64,000 nt of DNA, taken from contig NIVC01000350.1 of assembly GCA_002269645.1 (NCBI GenBank), positions 124,001-188,000 on the forward strand, read 5' to 3'. The position numbers and the translations under genes are program-made. Source of the DNA: Macrostomum lignano. Taxonomy: Eukaryota. How positions within the stretch are numbered: the first letter of the stretch is position 1; each line of letters starts with the position of its first letter. This document shows, piece by piece, positions 21,901-24,900 of this stretch. The notes beneath the pieces are model-generated. The model was not told the DNA's origin. It did not search any database and worked only from the letters and a program-made list of their open reading frames with translations.

Positions 21901-24900
21901 GATGCTTGCTGTCTGGGGGGGGTGCTTGCCATATGGGGGTGGGGGTGCTTGCTGACTGGGGGATGCTTGCTGTCTGGGGGGTGCTTGCTGTCTGGGGGCG
22001 CTTGCTGTCTGGGGGGATGCTTGCTGTCTGGGGGGTGCTTGCTATCTGGGGGTGGGGGTGCTTGCTGACTGGGGGATGCTTGCTGTCTGGGGGGTGCTTG
22101 CTATCTGGGGGTGGGGTGCTTGCTGTCTGGTGGGTGCTTGCTGTCTGGGGGATGCTTGCTGTCTGGGGGTTGCTTGCTATTTAGGGGGATGCTTGCTAAG
22201 GCTTTATTTTGTTGTCCTTTTGTTACTTGTGGAAAAAAAGATTCATAGAAAACATCTTTGTCCGTGACAATTTTACTCGAATACGAGTAAGGAAGGTGAT
22301 GTATCACTGAAGAAGTATTGAAATTTTGCAATAATTGGTTCTTAAGAAAATGTGCTTTTCTAATGGATTTGTATAAATAATTTTGCTCCTTGCTTATTGG
22401 CCGTCCCGAAGGGGGGGGCACTAGAGTGCTAGTTATGTACTCATATTCAATAGTGAATTGCTAATCTATGTATTGAGGATAAAGAGGATTGTTAATCTAT
22501 GCACCGAGAAGACAGTGGATTGCTAATCTATACAAGACAGTGGATTGCTAATCTATTCAAGACAGTGGATTGCTAATCTATACAAGACAGTGGATTGCTA
22601 ATCTATACAAGACAGTGGATTGCTAATCTATACAAGACAGTGGATTGCTAATCTATACAAGACAGTGGATTGCTAATCTAGACAGTTGATTGCTAATCTA
22701 TACAAGACAGTGGATTGCTAATCTATACAAGACAGTGGATTGCTAATCTATTCAAGACAGTGGATTGCTAATCTATACAAGACAGTGGATTGCTAATCTA
22801 TACAAGACAGTGGATTGCTAATCTATACAAGACAGTGGATTGCTAATCTATACAAGACAGTGGATTGCTAATCTATACACATGACAGTGGATTGCTAATC
22901 TATACACATGACAGTGGATTGCTAATCTATACAAGACAGTGGATTGCTAATCTATTCAAGACAGTGGATTGCTAATCTATACAAGACAGTGGATTGCTAA
23001 TCTATACACATGACAGTGGATTGCTAATCTATACACATGACAGTGGATTGCTAATCTATTCAAGACAGTGGATTGCTAATCTATTCAAGACAGTGGATTG
23101 CTAATCTATACAAGACAGTGGATTGCTAAGCTATACAAGACAGTGGATTGCTAATCTATACAAGACAGTGGATTGCTAATCTATACAAGACAGTGGATTG
23201 CTAATCTATACAAGACAGTGGATTGCTAAGCTCTACAAGACAGTGGATTGCTAAGCTCTACAAGACAGTGGATTGCTAAGCTATACAAGACAGTGGATTG
23301 CTAAGCTCTACAAGACAGTGGATTGCTAAGCTATACAAGACAGTGGATTGCTAAGCTCTACAAGACAGTGGATTGCTAATCTATACAAGACAGTGGATTG
23401 CTAAAGTTCATAGTCAGGGGGCACTAATAATTACAGGCCTGGGATTTCGCTACAGCGTATTCATCATGTCGGCCACCGCCGCCTCAGCCAATCCCGGCTT
23501 CCGCTGGGCAACCAGCCTCTGGAGCTTCATCCTGGCCTTGCTCAGCTTTTCCTCAGAGTGTCTGCACACTCTGGTTTTGGCCGACGTTCTCAACACCTGG
23601 CTGTCTGGCAGGTGCGTCGGTTGCCATCAACGACTCCGCTCCCTGTTGGACCGCTGGTGGCCGCTCATGATGCTGTTCTCAGCTGTGCTGGCGCTCTCGT
23701 CTCTGCCACTGTTTAGTGCGGTAATCGCTGAGGATAAGAACCGAACCCGGCATTTGATTGACACATGATTCGCTAATATTATCACTAGTGACGAATTCTA
23801 ACGAGTTGTAACTCTTGGCAGCTAGCGTGTTTGCTAATGCATTGTTAATGCTAAATCTGCTTTGATTAATAGATTTTTATTGAAAAAAATAAAAACTTGT
23901 CTGATCTCTCTGATCTCTGTGATCTCTGACCTCTCTTTGATCTCTGTGATCTCTGTGATCTCTGTGATCTCTCTGATCTTTGTGATCTCTGAGCTCTCTT
24001 TGATCTCTGTGATCTCTGTGATCTCTGTGATCTCTGTGATCTCTCTGATCTCTGTGATCTCTGATCTCTTTGATCTCTGTGATCTCTCTATAATCTTTCT
24101 TCTCTCTCTGATCTTTCTGATCTCTAATTTATCAGAGAGACATCCCCAATTAGATATCTTGAACTTTTGCTACTAAAAAACCTAAGTACGCGGATTAACA
24201 AGCTTACAAACTAATCAACAAAACTAACAATACCTCAGTTTGAAAAAAAACTTTTCAATAAGCAAACTCTGAGCTCCCCGAGATAAACAGCCTGGGCAAT
24301 GGCGATCCACATCCGATTGCCCCCGTTTGCCCCCTGCTGTTGCAGAGACTCTCGCAGGCGCATTCGCTGCCTACTCGGCGCTGCTCTGCTGGCAGCCGGC
24401 CTGGCTGAGTGGGATTCTGTTCTTGACAGCGGCAATTATCACCTTTCTCAACCTGGCCATCTGTGCCGACTGCCTGTCCGCCGTGGCCTTCACCGCCACC
24501 TCCGGCGCGCTGCGTCTCTGCGGCGGCCGGCCAATCAGCTTTCACGACCTGCTGCGAGTCGGCGGCGAAGGCCTTCGAGTCTGGTGGCTGCCGGCCTTCT
24601 GTCTGGGCATGGCCGGCCTGCAGCTGCCGCTCAGCACCTCTGTGCGGGACTGCCGGCCTGAGTTCCTGCTGCCTCCTGGCTGCCGTTTCTGTTGTGGCTG
24701 CCGGCACACCATATCCTTTAGCCTCAGGGTGTAGCCTGAGTACCCTACCTGGGACCCCAATACCCCAGCTGTGACTCCAATACCACAGCTGTGACTCCAA
24801 TACCCCAGCTGTGACCCCAATACCCCAGCTGTGACCCAAATACCCCAGCTGTGACCCAAATACCCCAGCTGTGACCCAAATACCCCAGCTGTGACCCAAA

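Follow-up and report, generated by a model that had tools for sequence, protein, structure and literature searches.

A putative pair of mutually exclusive TM8-TM9 exons in a divergent SLC6 gene of the flatworm Macrostomum lignano

Two tandem SLC6 genes and the exons between TM7 and TM10

The DNA analyzed was a stretch of 64,000 nucleotides from the flatworm Macrostomum lignano (contig NIVC01000350.1, positions 124,001 to 188,000; hereafter the window), which carries two tandem SLC6 transporter genes on its + strand. These were mapped with a local hidden Markov model (HMM) made from 70 SLC6 homologues and comprise an upstream SLC6 paralogue, gene 1 (~694-9843), and a divergent SLC6/SNF gene, gene 2, which the model placed at ~12926-26371 plus a tail exon and which spans 12860-27056 (+) when conceptually spliced at canonical GT-AG sites. 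Between the gene 2 exons encoding transmembrane helices (TM) 7 and 10 lie two further exons, termed A and B, which on balance are probably a mutually exclusive pair that are both used, a reading drawn from the sequence of the locus.

The first exon of gene 2, E1, ends at 13073 (GGC GGA G|gt) and is followed by E2 (13879-14153), E3 (15644-15773), E4 (16183-16318) and E5 (18287-18525), all with canonical splice sites. The TM7 exon E6 (20214-20341) ends in phase 1 (GAC A|gtgagt) and covers positions 330-370 of the local SNF HMM. The TM10 exon E8 (25780-25980) starts in phase 0 (cag|GCG GGA, translated as AGFHLVELL), is followed by GT at 25981 and alone scored 61.7 bits at HMM positions 452-520. 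Downstream are E9 (26207-26371), again with canonical splice sites, and a tail exon from ~26433. Scoring of both isoforms against the Pfam SNF profile (PF00209), proposed as a check in the initial annotation, gave full-length matches of 353.2 bits for the isoform with A and 347.1 bits for the isoform with B, covering positions 3-521 of 524, once a single base had been restored in exon 2 as described below. In protein searches with the spliced gene the top matches were two UniRef entries from M. lignano, P0002 (A0A1I8HVN2), which was 100% identical, and P0001 (A0A1I8F5Z4), which was nearly so, while other SLC6 proteins shared only ~30% identity. A start codon for gene 2 was not found. Just 5' of the gene is an open frame (11588-11953, +) with strong coding-type codon usage (29.1 at 11681-11860) and no Pfam match, which could be either a 5' exon with the missing start codon or a piece of another gene.

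Exon A (23437-23720, +; 284 nt) and exon B (24346-24641, +; 296 nt) are 625 nt apart between E6 and E8, and both start in phase 1 and end in phase 0. Exon A begins S LGFRYSVF, encodes extracellular loop (EL) 4b, TM8, intracellular loop (IL) 4 and TM9, and is bounded by the acceptor ...attacag|GC and the donor GCG|gtaatc. Exon B contains SFHDLLR and is bounded by the acceptor ...ttgcag|AG and the donor TCT|gtgcgg. The combinations E6+A+E8 and E6+B+E8 are in frame, while the frame of E6+A+B+E8 is closed by a stop that lies 63 nt inside B, and E6+E8, with neither exon, meets a stop after 9 codons. The coordinates, lengths, open frames, phases and splice dinucleotides given for the two exons in the initial annotation were thus all confirmed, as was its claim that either exon alone keeps the frame and both together shift it. 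Its observation that A and B stop at a common point after LPL also held, since both end in LPLxxx before the AGFHLVELL of E8, and an LPL before this junction is a feature of the family and is not special to the pair.

A single equivalent exon had been proposed in gene 1 and was found at 6716-6966 (+; 251 nt), where the phases (1 to 0) and the boundaries in terms of the protein match those of A and B. The junctions compare as ...TCQ|AGIYWFELL in gene 1, ...FSA|AGFHLVELL with A and ...STS|AGFHLVELL with B. The donor of B, previously described as weak, is together with that of A (gtgcgg and gtaatc, respectively) the weakest among the ten donors of gene 2, and weak donors are usual for regulated exons.

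Beyond the anatomy, small corrections to the earlier account were required, namely the end of the TM10 exon at 25980 and two additional acceptor positions for B. The first is an in-frame acceptor at 24358, which is the one taken in the public model P0002. The second arises from the acceptor region 24344-24348, which reads cAGAG, so that use of the second AG would start the exon at 24348 behind a poor gAG and shorten B to 294 nt. This start would permit an in-frame transcript with both exons (1+284 = 285; 24348-24641 = 294 nt, with B in its coding frame) and is the exception to the incompatibility of joint inclusion. The product would carry an extra helical hairpin, giving a 14 TM protein whose membrane topology is kept by the two extra helices. 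We regard joint inclusion as very improbable, as a gAG right after a good cAG is the least favored acceptor context, insertion of a hairpin between TM9 and TM10 is without precedent in the LeuT fold, and the two exons share their columns in the family profile.

Coding signal and family resemblance of the two exons

Codon usage is the strongest evidence that both A and B look like real coding exons. Openness alone was hardly informative, with all three + frames open across both GC-rich stretches. A codon-usage model trained on the other exons of gene 2 and on the open reading frame (ORF) of a G protein-coupled receptor (GPCR) elsewhere in the window gave log-odds in the required frame of +22.9 for A and +38.7 for B, and at most +1.4 and +1.0, respectively, in the remaining five frames. 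The GC content at third codon positions (GC3) was 0.76 in A and 0.80 in B, within the range of the other exons (0.60-0.85). Scanned in 10-codon windows, the signal was positive from the proposed acceptors and negative just beyond the proposed donors. When 7,107 open, unmasked 60-codon windows from both strands of the 64-kb window were ranked by codon score, B came 13th and A 22nd, and their neighbors in the ranking were independently identified exons of gene 1, ATP synthase subunit c, a RINGv protein and the GPCR. Scores of this height were confined to recognizable exons across the window. Between E6 and E8 the codon-usage threshold was reached by A and B only, which are the sole coding-like sequences there, and no third SNF-like copy was found between these exons with the local HMM nor any third DNA copy by self-comparison of the window. 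The finding is more than chance because codon usage picks the required frame in both exons and the signal is bounded by the splice sites.

The homology of A and B to the TM8-TM9 region of SLC6 transporters appears weak but position-specific. When A was placed between E6 and E8, the local HMM score was 80.2 bits compared with 62.3±3.1 for shuffled inserts, a gain of ~18 bits (z 5.7, 0/300 shuffles), and with B it was 73.0 compared with 63.0±2.9, a gain of ~10 bits (z 3.5, 3/300 shuffles). In the same context Pfam scored the flanking exons at 43.2 bits with no insert, and insertion of A or B raised this to 56.1 or 48.9 bits, respectively, compared with 41.4-45.1 for shuffles. In the profile, A and B fell on identical columns between TM7 and TM10, with weak support in the case of B. 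The two-helix hydropathy pattern of the gene 1 exon was also present in both, and the motifs RxWW and LPL were common to A and B. The family-conserved residues that remain differ between the exons, with FSSE in A where gene 1 has FSSQ, as had been noted by eye, and the family has GLDSQ. The FxAY and proline positions and the acidic residue previously attributed to B were likewise found, as AFAAY (F..AY), P.AW and the invariant Asp of the DxFP loop (FHD).

Support and counterevidence for use of both exons

The two exons probably arose by an old tandem duplication of an ancestral SLC6 TM8-TM9 exon, and each copy would run from the last part of extracellular loop 4 through TM8 and the intracellular loop to TM9. 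With lengths of 3n+2 and an upstream exon ending in phase 1, exactly one copy would keep the frame, and inclusion of both or neither would give a premature stop and no full-length protein, an exclusion of the frame-shift/nonsense-mediated decay (NMD) type. This is a documented way of enforcing mutual exclusion and is common among validated cases (PMC5740500). By the criteria for mutually exclusive exon clusters of tandem-duplication origin used in that study, A and B are adjacent exons with matching frame and phase, near-equal length and GT-AG sites that encode the same region of the fold, and their joint inclusion or skipping is incompatible with the frame. From these features we infer that both exons are spliced in vivo and that the isoforms may differ in function.

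The duplication would have to be old because self-comparison of the window detected no DNA similarity between A and B and their protein identity is ~20%, and a dead copy should therefore retain neither frame, splice sites nor codon bias. The same divergence bears on an assembly artifact, in which two alleles or homeologues of one exon from a repeat-rich, partly polyploid genome were misplaced in tandem. The M. lignano assemblies are redundant and error-prone and minisatellites flank both exons, yet alleles or homeologues are at least 95% identical (PMC5730564), and the unique flanks of A and B differ as well as the exons, so that this origin is scarcely credible.

Several results weigh against the interpretation of A and B as an exon pair in which both members are used. 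Neither A alone nor B alone matched SNF in Pfam, with the local HMM or by hhalign, while the gene 1 TM8-TM9 exon alone scored 66.9 bits with Pfam SNF and 73-75 bits with the local HMM. The likeness to the gene 1 exon recorded by eye in the initial annotation has little statistical strength. When either exon by itself was compared by hhalign with an alignment of 36 SLC6 sequences, the probability was 0.2% and the wrong helices were aligned, and an exhaustive phmmer search with B against 1.84 billion representatives returned only P0002 and three chance matches to bacterial repeat proteins. Local alignment of A with B was not significant, as 256/1000 shuffles reached the score, and their global alignment was marginal (z 2.65, 12/1000 shuffles). 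Alignments to solved SLC6 structures continued through A for almost every entry and broke off at B for most entries. Competing RNA pairing of the docking/selector type was sought in the unique intron segments, where matches were ≤10 nt, as expected by chance. Databases searched for a transcript-derived protein of gene 2 contained none of either isoform. A word-indexed protein search with E6+A+E8 returned no match although P0001 contains this sequence, which indicates that the index is incomplete and its negatives are weak.

Of the public gene models, one uses A and another uses B, which speaks for use of both exons, but both models are poor. P0001 extends from E4 to the tail and uses the E6-A junction, with A cut after ...CHQRLR and joined to E8 with LP inserted. 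In addition, its frame changes within E5 and E9, one residue is inserted and one is substituted, and it would therefore come from another, indel-bearing copy. P0002 starts at AFAAYS, corresponding to the acceptor at 24358, has the junction of 24641 with 25780 and matches the window exactly. It was considered as transcript evidence and rejected since its last ~500 residues translate the antisense strand of two ATP synthase subunit c genes and further GC-rich DNA, so that it looks like an ab initio product. Both models are unreliable predictions and show only that gene finders accept either exon. The starts of both partial models adjoin minisatellite arrays, which suggests that older contigs broke at those points.

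The contrast between A and B in the profile and structure comparisons raises the question of whether only one exon, probably A, is in use, with the other an unused or very rarely spliced duplicate that is still coding-like. A outscores B against SNF in context, is the exon through which almost all of the structural alignments pass, and has a competitor with the weak donor gtgcgg. The codon signal is nevertheless stronger in B and ends exactly at its splice sites, B has the stronger polypyrimidine acceptor, and an unused copy from so old a duplication should have decayed. Flanking exons such as E5 and E8 scored 62-74 bits alone, and a sole constitutive A should be conserved to the same extent, yet A alone is unrecognizable. 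Use of a single exon is accordingly possible and in our view doubtful. That A and B are far more diverged than these flanking exons fits relaxed or diverging selection on exons that are each in part of the transcripts, and would equally suit a gene that is losing its function.

The integrity of gene 2 is also called into question by exon 2, and this is a further point against a functional exon pair. At a run of Cs (13891-13894, +) the exon as assembled is 1 bp short and the reading frame is interrupted. After E1, E2 as assembled reads GC GCA TTC TTC GCC CCT ACC TCA TCA TGA, so that the join gives GGGAFFAP followed by a stop, with the conserved continuation one base out of frame. If one C is added, making five, the protein reads GGGAFFAPYLIMM, which is the family consensus. 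This frameshift had been overlooked in the initial annotation. A 315-bp inverted partial copy of gene 2 (55745-56053, -), comprising exon 2 and the start of its intron, lies 42 kb downstream between tandem repeats. It is 98% identical to gene 2 overall and identical in the exon except for the run of Cs, which is GCCCCC in the partial copy and GCCCC in gene 2. A homopolymer error of the assembly is likelier than a very recent inactivation because M. lignano assemblies are PacBio-based, with just 32-64% of bases judged to be free of errors (PMC5730564).

Gene 2 as a decaying pseudogene, in which the exon pair has no present function, is considered unlikely. The frameshift as assembled would fit decay, as would a TM8-TM9 region that is unrecognizable in both copies, the missing start codon and the absence of gene 2 from the transcript-based NCBI proteins in the search. 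With one C restored, however, the SNF match extends without interruption over the ten exons at 347-353 bits, the splice sites are canonical, and a high GC3 has been kept in all exons. The sole defect is a difference in homopolymer length from an otherwise identical copy, in a family of PacBio-based assemblies known for base errors and broken ORFs (PMC5730564). Overall, a mutually exclusive pair, with exclusion enforced by the reading frame, is the reading with most support.

Other features of the window were identified alongside the SLC6 genes. Tandem repeats masked by Tandem Repeats Finder (TRF) made up 21,056 of the 64,000 bases (33%), and long minisatellite arrays were present in nearly every intron of both SLC6 genes, examples being 20461-22197, 22509-23404, 23902-24118 and 24756-25629. 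This load fits the published account of the M. lignano genome, over half of which is repetitive and 15% of which consists of simple and tandem repeats (PMC5730564). A dispersed, unclassified repeat of ~310 bp occurs within a gene 1 intron (7057-7360) and at 57554-57864, the two copies being 82.6% identical. A gene 1 intron also contains a mariner/Mos1-type transposase (4703-5839, +; HTH_48 56.4 bits, Transposase_1 88.6 bits), which is degenerate as it is split over three reading frames. Two tandem copies of ATP synthase subunit c that are 99% identical lie on the - strand (32125-32535 and 34089-34499; Pfam ATP-synt_C 50.8 bits), as do a RING-variant (MARCH-like) exon (30221-30808; RINGv 46.8 bits) and a C3HC4 RING exon (53710-54036; 32.9 bits). 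The GPCR mentioned above is an intron-less, very GC-rich rhodopsin-family ORF of 450 aa (59565-60917, +; 7tm_1 62.5 bits), and the contig collection holds no record of it as a called gene.

Ion coupling and comparison with known exon swaps

TM8 gives two side-chain ligands of the Na2 site, which are T354 and S355 in LeuT, and the corresponding pair in most animal SLC6 transporters is D-S. Exon A has Ser-Ser at these positions, as does gene 1. For exon B the residues depended on the alignment and were Ala-Ile with the HMM, Ile-Ile with MAFFT and Asp-Cys by phmmer against GlyT2. Residue-level claims on the Na2 site of B were rejected, as the three alignments place B differently. The initial annotation had proposed that B lacks the two serines and could therefore differ in ion coupling. 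The TM8 of B is certainly without a Ser/Thr pair, and it is the identity of its Na2 residues that shifts with the alignment. That one SLC6 locus makes two transporters by a TM8-TM9 swap, one with the Ser-Ser Na2 site of A and the other, with B, without it and differently coupled or uncoupled, is accordingly a speculative and rather improbable proposal. If true, ion coupling in a LeuT-fold transporter would here be under splice control, which is not known to have been described for the SLC6 family. With a natural swap of TM8-TM9, the influence of TM8 on Na2 binding and coupling could be studied in matched isoforms.

Gene 2 itself is a fast-evolving orphan paralogue from a non-medical model animal, and the practical weight of the finding is moderate. 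There is also a lesson for annotation in a repeat-laden, error-prone flatworm assembly, as the two exons were divided between two faulty public models and neither was recognizable by profile search alone. Within the window the nearest comparison is gene 1, with which other M. lignano SLC6 genes such as P0003 were grouped, and which has a single well-conserved exon (66.9-75 bits alone) whereas gene 2 has two exons that score nothing alone. The known isoforms of SLC6 genes, such as GlyT1a/b/c and the N-terminal variants of GlyT2, arise from alternative first or last exons and differ in their tails. They leave the transmembrane core unchanged, while the gene 2 pair would swap TM8-TM9. In agreement with the statement in the initial annotation that no such cassette was known, literature searches found no TM8-TM9 or core cassette in SLC6 genes.

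Homologous exon substitution in the membrane cores of carriers is already known. Mutually exclusive exons of this kind are rare and for the most part old and functional, and in NKCC2 and CAT-2 they tune the affinity for ions or substrates. In SLC7A2 (CAT-2A/2B), substitution of a homologous exon alters kinetics or tissue use, and the same has been described for exons 3A/3B of SLC25A3 and exons 4A/4B of SLC39A14 (PMC5740500). Unlike gene 2, these three genes are outside the NSS/LeuT-fold SLC6 family and retain clear similarity between their exons. The exon 4 cassettes A/B/F of SLC12A1 (NKCC2) are tandem-duplicated and mutually exclusive, and the resulting isoforms differ in ion affinity. The third of these exons is mentioned in PMC9741552. 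SLC12A1 differs from the A/B pair in belonging to the SLC12 family with another fold, in exchanging TM2 and the adjacent loop, and in the 96-nt length and high similarity of its copies. It has been validated by transcripts and function, whereas the gene 2 pair is a candidate whose copies are almost unrecognizably diverged. The two systems would be alike in placing an exon swap within the membrane core of a solute carrier coupled to cations, at a helix that lines the ion pathway there.

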